From: Vitrella brassicaformis CCMP3155
Lineage: Eukaryota > Protista > Chromerida
Assembly: GCA_001179505.1 (NCBI GenBank)
Contig: CDMY01000725.1
Span: 1 to 27,084 of the forward strand
Direction of reading: 5' to 3'
Length of the DNA: 27,084 nucleotides
The position numbers were made by a program, and so were the translations under genes. Shown here piece by piece: positions 491 through 9,536 of the stretch. Every line of letters begins with the position of its first letter. The first letter of the stretch is position 1. Under the pieces are notes generated by a model that was not told where the DNA came from, ran no database searches, and saw only the letters and a list, made by a program, of their open reading frames with translations.

Positions 491-2464
491 CTATCTTTCC
501 TGGCTGCCTCCCCTGTGCCCATCTACGGCTTGTCGTCCTGCCTGCCTACACACGGCTACCATCCTTCAGCCTGTCATCCATCAGCATCAGCATCAGCTCC
601 ATCGATCCATTCATCCAGGGCTGCATCCTCTCCATCAGCACACGGTCCACGGCATCCAATCCATCCGTCCATCACATCCAGACACATACGTCCACACTTC
701 CAGTCATCTGAGCCGAGCGCCTTCATCAGGGCCACAGACAGGGGCGAAGGGCATCGTGAGCACTTCGCAACACCGCCTGCTTGGCAGTGGGGGCAGTTGC
801 AGCCGCCTGCTTGGCAGTGGGGGCAGTTGCAGTCGCCTGCTTGGCAGTGGGGGCAGTTGCACCCTCCTGCACACACATGGACAGTGGGCCGAGCGTGTGC
901 ATGTGCAGACCACAGACTCTCTCTTTCTCCTGCTGACCGTCACAGCCCCTGCCGCTGCAGTGAGGGCAGTTGCAGCCGCCTGCTTGGCAGTGGGGGCAGT
1001 CGCAGCCGCCTGCTTGGCAGTGGGGGCAGTTGCAGCCGCCTGCTTGGCAGTGAGGGCAGTTGCACCCTGCACCAGACCAAGCGTGTGCATGTAGATCGAT
1101 GAGATCGATGTCATGTGTGGATCGAAGTCTGTCTCTCTACTGACCGTCATGGTGGCCACAATTGCAGCCTTTGGGATTGCAGCTTTGGAGATTGCAGCCT
1201 TGGAGATTACAGCCTTGGAGATTGCAGCCTTGGAGATTGCAGCCCCCGTGATGACACTGGCACCCTTCCTCCTCCCCGGTCACTGCACACACATGGACAG
1301 CTGGCAAGTTTGGTGTGTGCTGATCACCTCTCTCTCTCTCTCTCTCTCTCTCTCTCTCACACACACACACACACACACTGACCGTTGTGGTGGCAGGAGC
1401 ATCCTTTTTCGCCTCTCTTGCACTGGCATCCTTTCTCGTTGCCGGCCTCGGTCAAGTCAGAGGGCGTCTCTGCACACACATATGGAGATCGATCTCTATC
1501 TCTGTCTCTGTCTCTCCCTCTCTCTCTCACACTGACCGTCGTGGTGGCACTTGCAGCCCCCACTAGACCCCTTCCCGCCCCCTTCCTCATCATCGATGTC
1601 CTCCGGCACATTCAGCTTGGAGTCCTCAATGGCCAGCGGCGCCCCGATTGGCACTATGCTGCTGTCGGAAGGGGTGATGGCGTGCTTCTTAATCAGCCTC
1701 CTCAGCTCCTTTTCGTCCGCTCCCCTTGACCTCGGCAAGCTTCTTGCCGCCTTTGATGAGATGGAATGTCGGCAGCATGTCGGTTGGCCTCTCGTTGAAT
1801 GCCAGGTTGTCCACATCAACCTTGCCGAATGTGACTGCGGGGTACTCGTGGCTGAGGGATTCGAGCTTCGGCGCTATTCGATCGCAGGCAACGCACCAGG
1901 AGGCCATGAAATCGATGACGAGGAGGACTGATGGCGGCGTATCTCTCTTGATGGCCTCCAGAGTAGGTCCATCGGCGATGTGGATGATCTCGTTCTCCTT
2001 GCCGACCTCGGTTAAGCCAGAGGGCGTCACTGCACACACATGGACAGCTGGCAAGTGTGCGTGTGTAGATCGATCTCTATCTCGGTCTCTCTCTCACACT
2101 GACCGTCGTGGTGGTGGTGGTGGTGGTGGCAGCTGCAGCCTTTCTCGCCTGTCTTGCACTGGCACCCTTTCTCCTTGCCGGGCTCGGTCAAGTCAGAGGG
2201 CGTCTCTGCACAGACATGGACAGCTGCAAGTGTGTGCGTGTGTAGATCGATCTATGTCTCTGTCTCTCCCTCTCTCTCGCACTGACCGTCGTGGTGGCAC
2301 TTGCAGCCCCCGCAGCTGCAGCCTTGGCAGGTGCAGCCCCCACCAGACCCTTCCCCGCCCCCTTCCTGCTCGCCGGTCACTGCACACACATGGACAGCTG
2401 GCAAATGTGTGCATGTGCAGACCTTCTCTTTCTCTTGCTGACCGTCATGCTTGAAAAGCACAGT
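491..2464 (-). CDS. Cys/His-rich (metallothionein-like) repeat protein with an embedded thioredoxin domain; 3' exons of a multi-exon gene with a 1-bp frameshift in the Trx exon
   Basis: GT-AG exons traced by hand: 2464-2443, 2379-2287, 2205-2104, 2029-1537, 1469-1383, 1282-1145, 1066-938, 866-690, and probably 537-491. All internal junctions are phase 1. The Trx domain reads IDFMASWCVACDRIAP...FGKVDVD...MLPTFHLIKGGKKLAEVKG/ADEKELRRLIKKH. Flanking exons encode GCTCQGCSCGGCKCHHD, CQC..CSCHHHHHHHD, (GCNLQ)n and (GCNCPHCQAG)n. An extra base at 1722-1725 shifts the frame: the exon is 493 bp, whereas the other internal phase-1 exons are multiples of 3. Confidence 0.8.
760..1066. repeat. 30-bp coding tandem repeat (7 copies over two exons) encoding C[ND]CPHC
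   Basis: Unit gcagttgcagccgcctgcttggcagtgggg is visible on the + strand: 3 copies at ~777-866 and 4 at ~955-1066. Confidence 0.9.
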
Positions 2465-2584
2465 CTTGACGTACCACACACACACACACACACACACAGA
2501 GAGAGATAGAGAGAGAGAGAGAGAGAACGAAGCAGCAGTCCAGACTCCGTACAGAAGGTGTGTGTTTCATTAGTCAGTGCTCAC

Positions 2585-3600
2585 GTCTGTGTCGATGTAG
2601 ACCTTGCCGCCCTGACAGATACGCATATATAGAAAAAGCGACAGAGAGAGAGACACAAGAATGTATCGGAAGTGGTGCGTGAGCATCAGGCGGGAGACGC
2701 TGACCGGCGCGAGGAGCGAGTGAATGTTCTGCCAAAATGGGGTTTTGAGCTTCAAGGCCGGCAGCCACTGGCTGATATTTTTGTCTGTCGATGGCGGGGT
2801 ATCCGCGGTGTCCCAGTAGATGGGAAAAAGGGCACGACAAGAGCACGATGTGATGGAAGTGGTGGAGCGGAAGTCCTAGATTCTTGTGGGCAGAATCGAC
2901 CTGCAAGGAATGCATGCATGAGGGGATAGCAATAGCTGCAGGAGTCTCTCACCTACCTGTGCAGTGTTTTCCATGTCGAGCTGCCAAAAAGGCGGCACAG
3001 GAACGTAGGCGAGGAGAGACCACGCATCAGAATTCTTGTTATCGTTGACGATGCCGTGGTCAGGGATCTCAAACTGGACCATGCCCTCCTTCTTCGAGTA
3101 TCCGCTGAGCTTGCGCGGCACCCCTTCCTTGGATTGCCAATCCATGAGCGTAACGCCCCCCATTTATGTCTTCCACCTGCACAGGTAGGCAACACAAGTC
3201 GTGCACGTGAGCGCACATGACATCCGCAGCAGCCGGCACTGGACAGACCATTCTAGGGGGGGACGCTCTCCGGGAGTGCTGTTCGGCTGGCCTAGGCCAT
3301 GAATCACGAAGTCCGGCCTTCCGAAGATGGGCGAATGACATGCTTGACATCAAAAGCATTGATTGCAAAGTGTGCTTTAAATTTGTGTGCGCTCTTGACT
3401 GCATTTCATGATATACCCAGCAGAGTATTCGGGACGTGCTTCCTCTCAAGTCGAAGGAAGGAGTTGTCGACGTCAGCTTGACCGATGGAGGAATTGTGGC
3501 GCGAGCCCCAAGACCAGCCCAGAGTCACTGGGAGGTAGCTCAGCAGTGTCAGCAGATGGAAATATGCCAACATTGCAATGCCGTGACGGGGCGACATCAT
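2585..3600 (-). CDS. 5' exons of the same gene: hydrophobic leader plus a segment ending in a DxD glycosyltransferase-like (GT32-type) motif
   Basis: Exons 3163-2957, 2875-2657 and 2611-2585 join in frame (phase 0) to exon 2464-2443, giving SRLMLTHHF..GGKVYIDTDTVLFK. ATG 3600 opens a hydrophobic N-terminus (MMSPRHGIAMLAYFHLLTLLSYLPVTLG). Linking it to the rest requires crossing an in-frame TAA at 3166-3164, so the 5' model is uncertain. Confidence 0.45.
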
Positions 3601-7742: not shown

Positions 7743-8410
7743 TCAGGCGCGATCTTTCTTGACGCGAGGTCCCGTCCAGAGGACCACCCAGGGCAGCGCC
7801 ACCAGTGTCCACACCATCGTCCTGGCGAAACGCGCAAAATCGTGGTCGTCCACCTCGACACTCGCCAGCCGTATGAGCAGATCCGACACGCTCAAACTGC
7901 ACGCGCGCGCGCGGAGAGAGAAACAGAGGCATAGAACATCCTTTCTTATGCAGCCAGGGCAGTTCCGTGGGAAACGATCTGCTCACTCATTGCTCCAGAT
8001 GTCGATGGCGTGCGAGTACTGGGCCAGCACAGGCACGACGTTGTCCAGGAACTTGGCCTGCATCATGCCAATGGTCCACCCGAGCGCCCAGGCAACGCCC
8101 TGCTTGTTGGCCTGGACGTAGGCATTGATCATGAGCGCCAACGTCCCGCCCAAGCACGCCGCAACCGCATCCCGCGATGTCAGGCCGATGGCAGTCATTC
8201 CGACGGCAGTCAGTGGCCGCATTCTCTGTCGGTGCAGTGCATGTGAAGACGCGTGTGTCAGAGGTGCGTGGGCGGGCCGGATGAAGGCGCCACGCGTCAG
8301 CAGGGGCGACAGGAGAGATACAAGCAGAAGGCGGAAGCTGCAAACACCAGCACGCGCTTGCGAGTAGACATTGACTGTATGCCAGTGGTTTCTCACCTCA
8401 ACGCCACCAT
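7743..8410 (-). CDS. Predicted plastid-targeted small membrane protein (172 aa), unknown family
   Basis: Three GT-AG exons (8410-8397, 8337-7987, 7896-7743) splice in frame to a stop. Product: MVALSFRLLLVSLLSPLLTRGA-FIRPAHAP (signal peptide, Phe at +1, basic/hydroxylated transit-like stretch) followed by 2-3 hydrophobic segments. Confidence 0.7.
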
Positions 8411-8739
8411 ACTGTCTGAGCCTCGGGATCTTGCTGCAAGCCGTTCAAAGATGCGCGCACGCAGTGTGGCCGACGACGAGGTGTGCCCGAGTCGGAGGCT
8501 TCATACATAATACATTGGAGGACCCCATCAATCCGAAAAGGTACCGTTAAACGCAAAGTGCTTTGCTTTTCAGGAGTGGGTGCATTCCACTCTTTTTCTT
8601 GAACAGTGATGAGGTGGACTCTCTTTTGCTCCGTGGGGCATCAGATCAACGAATCTGATGAAAGATCTCGTTTGCGCTTGGTCAGGACAACGACAGCAGT
8701 TGGGTGTCTGCCGAGGAGCGCAGGAGGTGCCCGTGGAGA

Positions 8740-9536
8740 AGCAGTGGGAGGCCGACCGGCCTGCCCTGCAGAGCCTGGGCATCTTCCCCGAGGGCATGCG
8801 GACCCCATATTCGGGCTCGGTATGTGCCGATCAGACAAAGGAAAGCCGTTGCCGTATACAACACCCCCACCCATTGGTCTCGTGTGTGTGCGGGCGTGCC
8901 TGTAGGCGTGGCCGTTGCGATTGCCATCCACAACATCCTCGAGGGCATCGCCGTGAGTGTCCCGATCTTCTACGCCACAGGCAGCAAATGCAAGGCATTC
9001 TGTAAGCAACTTACTTGTGCACACAGACGACAGGGAGACGGAGGAATGCATGCGCGTCTGTGTATGTGTATGTGTATGTGTGTGTGTCCTCTAGGGTGGT
9101 CTGTGCTGTGTGGCGCTGCGGAGCCGGTTGGCGGTTTGTTGGCGTGGGTCGTACTCACAAACCTGATGGTGAGTGACACCCACCACCGCAAACACAATCA
9201 CAAAGCCCCACACGCCCCATCATGTCGCCATTCTCTTCGGCCTCGTGGGCGGCATCATGGTCCACATCTGCAGCAAGAAACTCATCGCGACCGCCCTGCG
9301 ATACGACCCACACGTACGCACACACACACACACATACACTTGCGAATGCAGCGGACACAGCCCCAACTGGGGCGGGGAGACGGGAAGAGACAGACAGGCC
9401 AAGTGCGTGAGAAACTAGCCACACATGTGGGGGTGTGCTTATGTGATTGTGTCAGGACTACCTATCCTCTGACATCGTGTTGGTGGGCATGGCTGTGATG
9501 GCGCTCAGTCTGGTTCTCCTGGCCTTCTATGGCTGA
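8740..9536 (+). pseudogene. ZIP-family (ZupT/GufA-like) zinc/iron transporter, 5'-truncated and frameshifted
   Basis: Exons ~8740-8819, 8906-9001, 9095-9168, ~9206-9313 and 9456-9536 give [49 protein letters not shown]...FGLVGGIMV...TALRYDP...GMAVMALSLVLL*. The TM4 motif reads GIFPEGM (HN missing) and is out of frame with DPIFG. No N-terminal TM1-3 is found upstream. Confidence 0.8.

Follow-up and report, generated by a model that had tools for sequence, protein, structure and literature searches.

A thioredoxin reductase paralog and a thioredoxin-bearing cassette gene in Vitrella brassicaformis: a transcribed and spliced neighbourhood whose full-length products are probably no longer encoded

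The stretch of DNA described here, hereafter the window, comprises the 27,084 nucleotides of contig CDMY01000725.1 (assembly GCA_001179505.1) of the chromerid Vitrella brassicaformis CCMP3155. It is intron-rich eukaryotic DNA in which two genes lie head to head: on the minus strand, a gene built of repeated Cys/His-rich exon cassettes, one of which encloses a thioredoxin (Trx) segment, and on the plus strand, a gene for a thioredoxin reductase (TrxR) paralog. Past the TrxR gene there are a small gene on the minus strand and a fragment of a ZIP transporter gene on the plus strand (Table 1). A sequence-only reading of this DNA had proposed that it holds a TrxR and its Trx substrate expressed from a bidirectional promoter, together with a ZIP importer. 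The gene identities that it assigned, i.e., a TrxR, a Trx within a metallothionein-like cassette gene and a ZIP relic, were borne out by matches to Pfam, to the Plasmodium falciparum TrxR 4b1b and to ZupT. The state in which these genes are found, in the window and in a second, syntenic copy, is the subject of this report.

The two divergent genes start at ATG 3600-3598 (minus strand) and ATG 3891 (plus strand), 290 bp apart, and both open with a hydrophobic leader that is signal-peptide-like by sequence; the minus-strand leader begins MMSPRHGIAMLAYFHLLTLLSYLPVTLG. Evidence at the level of RNA and DNA was taken from Logan contigs of four sequencing runs over positions 600-6599 of the window. 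Runs X1 and X3 are DNA-like, as their contigs run through introns, while X11, and partly X13, are RNA-like. The 5' exons of both genes are present in RNA-like contigs of X11 (3417-3620 on one side; 3975-4331 plus the sites 3934 and 3974 on the other), so that around the divergent region the RNA contigs reach 3620 and at least 3934, respectively. The head-to-head arrangement with two leaders, as first described from the sequence, is thus confirmed. Since the contigs and splice joints of X11 cover both genes, the cassette gene and the TrxR gene are transcribed and spliced. The DNA runs show in addition, at 3609-3966, a depth of roughly four times that of the surroundings, and several of their contigs diverge here or skip 47-84 nucleotides (nt), with joints at 3786/3871 and 3827/3875. 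There seem to be extra or variant copies of the shared promoter region and of the TrxR leader exon.

The second copy is scaffold CDMY01000749.1 (L001), which is syntenic with positions 2034-12627 of the window at 87-97% nucleotide identity and keeps the same gene order: cassette gene (minus), TrxR (plus), small gene (minus) and Zip (plus). Where the two copies differ, the letter found in the run contigs is in some places that of the window and in others that of L001, the two kinds being intermixed. Because either copy's letters occur in them, both copies are present in the sequenced cultures; because the contigs are mosaics of the two, the lesions described below cannot be phased from these contig-level data.

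The TrxR gene was modelled with 12 exons which, read without a 4-nt insertion at the end of exon 1, encode 631-633 amino acids (aa). Residues 1-116 comprise the hydrophobic N-terminal leader and a Gly-rich region, an extension found only in Vitrella. The exon pieces match the Pfam families PF07992 (Pyr_redox_2), PF00070 (Pyr_redox) and PF02852 (Pyr_redox_dim, E 2e-18), and in a full-length alignment with eight TrxRs the FAD/NAD(P)-binding and dimerisation domains are present. Exon 2 encodes CLNVGC, the CxxxxC redox site, and the last exon can be aligned over its whole length with P. falciparum TrxR 4b1b (E 4e-41), the C-terminal GGCGGGRCG of the window being placed on GGCGGGKCG of 4b1b; the Plasmodium-type second redox centre, GCGGGxCG, is therefore kept. 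Judged by its predicted fold and redox motifs, the protein is a member of the large non-seleno TrxR family, but in this copy neither the reading frame nor the catalytic His is intact.

Splicing of this gene follows the model closely. X11 contains GT-AG joints for introns 3-10 exactly as predicted, one of which is also found in X13, and a joint for intron 2 that carries L001-type letters. A loose end of an X11 contig corresponds to splicing at intron 11, whose borders may be GT 6175 to AG 6252, or 6180/6181 joined to 6253/6254; both options are in frame, and the loose end better matches the second one. A perfect 31-nt tandem duplication at 4869-4932 spans the border of intron 3 and exon 4, so that the acceptor and the first 21 exon bases occur twice; the RNA uses the second acceptor (joint 4812/4909), and the first would give a stop.

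The lesions that the sequence-only reading had reported in all three genes turned out for the most part to be ordinary GT-AG introns, although real frame breaks are found in each gene. In the TrxR gene, an attempt to read all the apparent lesions as introns accounts for every one except the donor of exon 1. Here the window carries a 4-nt insertion, GAAG, and the corresponding donor of L001, GTCAAG|GTGAGT, is in frame without it. Splicing at the canonical GT 4342 was computed to give a shifted message in which CLNVGC is never read and a stop follows after 196 residues. Between 4331 and 4454 the X11 contig has 10 letters (8 unaligned plus AG), which is the number predicted if GAAG is present, as against 6 if it is absent. 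Two ways of restoring the frame were considered and rejected: a GA donor at 4338, given that L001 has a plain GT donor and that the RNA junction has 10 letters and not 6, and an in-frame acceptor at 4418, which would add 13 residues, given that exon 2 begins at 4452/4454 in the RNA contig.

The second defect of the window TrxR is the replacement by Gln of the conserved catalytic His of the GIHPT(D/N)AE motif (Table 1). L001 has CAC (His) at this codon, and in X3 and X11 the G of position 6489 is replaced by C. In P. falciparum TrxR, replacement of this His reportedly abolishes most of the activity. L001 has defects of its own, namely 1-nt deletions that correspond to window positions of about 4660, 6277 and 6381; the first of them, at the start of exon 3, is also present in the X11 RNA contig, and the last accounts for a minority of the X1 and X3 depth. 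Over the conserved part of the protein the two copies differ by 20 nonsynonymous and 14 synonymous changes, and both carry derived changes at conserved TrxR sites.

A search with the Toxoplasma gondii TrxR retrieved an intact Vitrella TrxR of 512 aa (P0203, on the 219-kb scaffold CDMY01001040.1) and a Chromera TrxR of 586 aa (P0214), which share 54% and 57% identity, respectively, with the TrxR of the window. In a tree of TrxRs the window protein has the longest terminal branch; the tree is otherwise unresolved. By these comparisons the window TrxR is a fast-evolving side paralog. As the intact canonical enzyme sits elsewhere, redox housekeeping is independent of the window locus. No Trx, cassette gene or ZIP occurs among the neighbours of P0203; these include a divergent gene 347 bp upstream, which indicates that genes diverging some 300 bp apart are nothing unusual in this genome. 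The downstream neighbour, 258 bp 3' of the canonical TrxR, encodes a DCC1-like thiol-disulfide oxidoreductase (PF04134; genomic segment L002, 10001-13663). An intron-free, RNA-type Logan contig of 6280 nt from run ERR558152 (L003) contains the canonical TrxR, the DCC1-like gene and two more neighbours in genomic order, which could be the product of read-through transcription or of overlapping untranslated regions.

The cassette gene was modelled with 12 exons, E1 to E12. Exons E6-E12 have a common acceptor, ...TGTGTGCAG, and a common phase-1 donor, GACG|GTCAG, and the introns between these last seven exons are copies of one another; for this reason the gene can be said to have grown by duplication of an exon-plus-intron unit. 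The units encode Cys/His-rich peptides, such as GCQCKTGEKGCSCHHHHHHHD and the repeated GCNCPHCQAG. Their likeness to metallothionein is one of composition only, rich in CxC and CxxC: no Pfam family matches the Cys-rich C-terminal piece at E values up to 5, and no described metallothionein family was matched. In X11, RNA contigs of the cassette gene cover, besides the leader exon, 2828-2898 joined to 2955-3117, and 1563-1992, with splice joints at 2898/2955 and 865/937. Searches with E2 and E3 returned no N-terminal domain family; the pattern LPFDHF...APGGKVYID is reminiscent of the C-terminal half of a class I methyltransferase. The C-terminal part of the gene, at 608-772 on the minus strand, shows a depth of about 122 in X11, compared with about 5 elsewhere in the locus, and of up to about 1450 in X13, and at 761 and 772 contigs part from the window. 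The Cys-rich C-terminal segment KCSRCPSPL...CGRMCLDVMDGW... is thus common to this gene and to one or more relatives with high expression.

The Trx segment lies within exon E8. It has no intron and matches the Trx domain PF00085 at E values of 5.7e-15 and 1e-13, and thioredoxins of the PDB at 1e-13; its best matches are cytosolic-type thioredoxins. The active site reads WCVAC in place of WCGPC, i.e., Gly-Pro has been replaced by Val-Ala, and a LPTF motif aligns with the cis-Pro loop of solved thioredoxins, so that the cis-Pro is retained. The borders of E8 betray how the segment may have arrived. The 5' end of E8 with the preceding intron is 90% identical to that of E7 (1993-2050 versus 2169-2226), and also resembles E9, while the 3' end, together with the intron behind it, is 88-89% identical to its counterpart at E6 (1501-1587 versus 2251-2367). 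Capture of the Trx sequence would thus have replaced the 3' part of one cassette exon, an intron and the 5' part of the next exon. A search for the source gene among proteins of 55-175 aa found none in the collection that shares three 5-mers with the Trx segment.

Nothing in L001 as assembled matches this Trx segment; there the E7 intron is followed by no acceptor and runs straight into the middle of a CPHC cassette. The contigs that cover the Trx exon have the lowest depth of the locus (26.8 in X1 and 14.1 in X3, versus about 38 and about 24 elsewhere), consistent with its presence in one copy only.

The predicted cassette mRNA contains three frame breaks. The one in the Trx exon is an extra nucleotide in a run of G, by which the first frame stops at TAA 1691-1689, whereas the next frame reads ADEKELRRLIKKH, the last Trx helix, and continues into the downstream cassettes. 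This insertion is real and present in RNA, since no gap opens at this place between the window and the contigs of X1 and X3 (1540-2055) or that of X11 (1563-1992). The other two are located upstream. At the start of E2 the phases of the joined exons disagree in both copies, and in the window TAA 3166-3164 abuts ATG 3163. Since the GC content by codon position marks both the ATG frame of E1 and the MGGV frame of E2 as coding-like, it is suggested that the leader and E2 once formed one open reading frame (ORF), broken before the copies diverged. In E3 the window has a 1-nt insertion. The ORFs that open at ATG 3600 and ATG 3163 run for 142 and 144 residues. Within the window the Trx domain cannot be reached in frame from any start codon, and no frame joins a leader to the Trx domain in either copy. 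The leader attributed to the Trx gene does exist and is transcribed, but it is out of frame with the rest of the gene.

The ZIP gene is indeed placed about 2 kb beyond the TrxR gene (stop 6588, ZIP from 8609), as had been noticed, but a separate gene on the minus strand lies between the two. The ZIP exons match ZupT (NF003243) and encode, in both copies, only positions 110-266, approximately, of the profile; individual exons match positions 110-155 (in L001), 153-185 and 211-244. The first 110 or so positions, which correspond to transmembrane segments (TM) 1-3 of the eight-helix core, are missing, and no exons for them were found on the plus strand of 6600-8760. Compared with L001, the window is without 30 nt after 8782 and 22 nt after 8797, in the exon coding ...AMYNFPEGIATFTAAL...; these losses remove the ...NFPEGIATF... 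core and shift the frame, with a stop in the next exon. The (H/x)NxPEG metal-site motif of TM4, which in L001 reads YNFPEGIATF, is therefore lost. A further 50 nt, including the acceptor of the fourth ZIP exon, are absent from the window at 9224. The intervening gene encodes a hydrophobic product (…GLTSRDAVAACLGGTLALMINAYVQANKQGVAWALGWTIGMMQAKF…) and is conserved in L001, where it has a 170-aa model. It has no match in Pfam, NCBIfam or Atlas, and the idea that the minus-strand ORF 7983-8396 is an inverted N-terminal half of the ZIP was rejected, as none of the three supports it.

The supposition that the window is a decaying duplicate of an intact locus was supported in one half only. A syntenic copy does exist, but L001 has its own indels, in-frame stops, a missing acceptor and assembly gaps; no intact copy of the locus was found, both the window and L001 being damaged, and the intact TrxR P0203 is unlinked. 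The cassette array of L001 (5900-8130, minus strand) is much longer than that of the window, with many GCSCPHCQxGG units and a 782-aa model. It contains in-frame TGA codons, Cys-to-Tyr and Cys-to-Trp changes and altered acceptors; to judge from these features, this array is also degenerate or mis-assembled. Exon 1 of TrxR occurs twice in L001 (10001-10447 and 10971-11435), flanking a 300-N gap, and for that reason the duplication is a scaffolding artefact, which in turn explains the truncated annotation of the gene: P0001, a model of 148 aa that ends in the first intron and leaves the remaining 11 exons unannotated. This 'unnamed protein product' of V. brassicaformis CCMP3155 is the one close relative of exon 1 of the window TrxR (84% identical). 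In a single representative search with the last exon no relative exceeded 70% identity, so that the body of this TrxR is unannotated in the reference. The window itself contains four runs of exactly 300 N (13267-13566, 16253-16552, 19341-19640 and 21338-21637), scaffold gaps that give rise to the low-GC bins of its composition profile. Part of the sequence ahead of a gap recurs behind it, as in 13567-13949, which matches the same L001 stretch as 11877-12627, and likewise around the gaps of L001.

Table 1. Features of the locus, with positions counted from the first nucleotide of the window (copy L001 is scaffold CDMY01000749.1)
Feature	Position	Strand	Remarks
Cassette gene	574..3620	-	12 exons, stop at 574
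Cassette exons E1-E4	3620/3600-3417 (leader), 3176-2957 (ATG 3163), 2900-2705, 2611-2585	-	
Cassette exons E5-E8	2449-2443, 2379-2287, 2205-2104, 2029-1537 (Trx)	-	
Cassette exons E9-E12	1469-1383, 1282-1145, 1066-938, 866-574	-	
Trx-coding segment	1588..1992	-	Intronless, ~405 nt including a short tail, within E8
1-nt insertion in G-run AAGGGGAGCGG	1721..1726	-	Before last Trx helix
1-nt insertion in E3	2750..2757	-	Relative to L001; ATG-3163 frame shifts and stops in micro-exon E5
E2 start	3164..3176	-	Leader exon ends in phase 1, E2 needs phase 2; both copies
Divergent intergenic region	3601..3890	.	290 bp between the two leader exons
TrxR paralog	3891..6588	+	12-exon model, ATG 3891 to stop 6588
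TrxR exons 1-6	3891-4337, 4454-4561, 4652-4813, 4910-5041, 5095-5229, 5291-5427	+	
TrxR exons 7-12	5494-5566, 5635-5689, 5744-5903, 5966-6028, 6087-6174/6181, 6253/6254-6588	+	
GAAG insertion (tandem AAGG duplication)	4338..4341	+	Between last in-frame exon-1 codon and GT donor 4342
CAG (Gln) at catalytic His of GIHPT(D/N)AE	6487..6489	+	His in all seven aligned TrxRs
Small membrane-protein-like gene	~7743-8396	-	Unrelated; between TrxR and ZIP; 170-aa model in L001
ZupT-like ZIP fragment	8609..9536	+	Exons 8609-8819, 8906-9001, 9095-9168, 9206-9313, 9456-9536

Taken together, the window probably holds one copy of a neighbourhood of about 10 kb that occurs at least twice in diverged form, as alleles or as paralogs. 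This copy is transcribed and correctly spliced but probably no longer encodes full-length products, and would not be a functional metal/redox cluster. In the course of events that we propose, the two leader exons would be driven from the one divergent promoter region of 290 bp, an arrangement common in this compact genome; the ancestral TrxR paralog and the cassette protein would have entered the endomembrane route, on their way to the plastid or to secretion; and selection on the locus may have been relaxed because an intact canonical TrxR exists elsewhere. Several observations count against this conclusion. Between the copies exons diverge less than introns (3.7% versus 8.4%) and every splice site that could be checked in the RNA contigs is used; conserved exons and working splice sites imply that constraint was lost recently or only in part. 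The presence of GAAG in RNA is deduced from a count of letters beside a masked (GTGA)n microsatellite and not from the letters themselves, and the insertion at 2756 in E3 is confirmed by no run, the X1 contig having only the L001 state ('2756 left out 1'). L001 has a 300-N gap inside its cassette array, by which the absence of the Trx segment from that copy is not proven. Finally, the mosaic contigs allow for an allele that combines all the good states.

Such an allele is what a different explanation, doubtful but deserving attention, would require: the genes would be functional in some real haplotype, and the breaks would be mosaic or consensus artefacts of a fragmented assembly of 2015, or would belong to one dispensable allele. 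The genes would then be simply neighbours, i.e., a leader-bearing TrxR paralog (probably of the plastid or the endomembrane system), a Cys/His-rich cassette protein that is polymorphic, and a short ZIP. In favour of this view, the two scaffolds are short and contain many 300-N gaps whose flanks are duplicated, the run contigs mix the states of the two copies, and the good states are split between them: the catalytic His, Lys171 and the canonical donor are in L001, and an intact exon 3 and last exon are in the window. The better conservation of exons and the splicing of all tested introns point in the same direction. Nevertheless, the assemblies of three runs, one of them RNA-like, agree on the extra nucleotide of the Trx exon, the RNA contig has the L001-type 1-nt deletion in exon 3 and apparently GAAG as well, and the phase mismatch between leader and E2 and the missing N-terminus of the ZIP are common to both copies.

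The least probable of the explanations is the one from which the study departed, that TrxR and a Trx-metallothionein substrate, sharing a bidirectional promoter and co-targeted to the secretory pathway, form with the ZIP importer a lumenal or extracellular module in which NADPH, TrxR and Trx serve a metal sponge, the window being a decayed copy of it. It can appeal to the head-to-head leader exons 290 bp apart, both transcribed, to the order of cassette gene, TrxR and ZIP, which is the same in both copies, and to the existence of a bacterial Trx-metallothionein chimera with reductase and metal-binding activity (PMC13578184). However, the spacing is ordinary, the ZIP is half a transporter with another gene between it and the TrxR, and the TrxR is a degenerate side paralog, while the canonical TrxR has no such neighbours. 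The pairing of enzyme and substrate on a secretory route also lacks support on the Trx side: the segment is missing from the assembled second copy, in the window no start codon reaches it in frame, no frame links it to the leader in either copy, and its active site is WCVAC and not WCGPC. Given the lack of a match in L001 and of a close relative in the protein collection, the linkage of TrxR and Trx is not conserved even within the species as assembled.

The leaders, for their part, do not specify a lumenal or extracellular site. Chromerid plastid proteins carry a signal peptide for the endoplasmic reticulum (ER) ahead of a transit peptide, and conservation of the Phe behind the cleavage site is not strict in Vitrella (PMC6668581), so that a chromerid signal peptide is also the first half of a plastid-import signal. 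Import into the plastid or the endomembrane system would suit the predicted TrxR leader no less than a location in the ER lumen or outside the cell, and considering the supply of NADPH the plastid may be the more natural destination. There is a very small chance that, in some haplotype or recent ancestor, the leader-bearing TrxR paralog and a leader-bearing WCVAC-Trx/metallothionein-like cassette protein, expressed from one divergent promoter and sent via the ER to the plastid periphery or outside, formed an NADPH-driven pair for thiol and metal buffering unlike any described eukaryotic system.

A working cluster of this kind would matter if it were true, as a TrxR system on the secretory route would be new, and to our knowledge eukaryotic enzyme-substrate pairs on one promoter are rare. 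Under the reading that we prefer, that of a neighbourhood in diverged and broken copies, other aspects are of interest. A chromerid has a second, fast-evolving and leader-bearing TrxR lineage alongside its intact canonical enzyme, and the cassette gene offers a clear case of growth by duplication of exon plus intron, with a Trx domain apparently captured inside one unit. It should also be kept in mind that small, gap-rich Vitrella scaffolds hold diverged, frame-broken second copies and that the annotation cuts the TrxR to 148 aa; for these reasons, claims about gene content and clustering in this assembly need phasing.

With regard to known systems, the ZIP exons match part of the profile of ZupT-type transporters (NF003243, PF02535), but TM1-3 are absent from both copies and in the window the core is deleted and frame-shifted. 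The cassette gene recalls TrxA of Runella aurantiaca, a natural Trx-metallothionein chimera for which reductase and metal-binding activity have been shown (PMC13578184). Both join a Trx domain to Cys-rich sequence, metal-binding in TrxA, in one polypeptide, which is a likeness of design. TrxA is a simple two-domain protein, whereas the Vitrella Trx sits in the middle of an array of duplicated exon-intron cassettes, has a WCVAC active site and is frame-shifted. The window TrxR belongs to the same family as the canonical Vitrella enzyme P0203 and has the same C-terminal motif; P0203 is intact, leaderless and surrounded by other neighbours, while the window protein, 54% identical to it, bears a leader and is broken. 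In comparison with the high-Mr TrxRs of apicomplexans and other protists, such as those of P. falciparum (4b1b) and T. gondii, the window copy has Gln in place of the catalytic His and a frame-breaking 4-nt insertion. It is like them in its FAD and NADPH domains, in CLNVGC, in the dimerisation domain and in the GCGGGxCG end; nevertheless, it is only 48-57% identical to the apicomplexan and chromerid TrxRs, forms the longest branch among them and carries the 116-residue extension that is peculiar to Vitrella.

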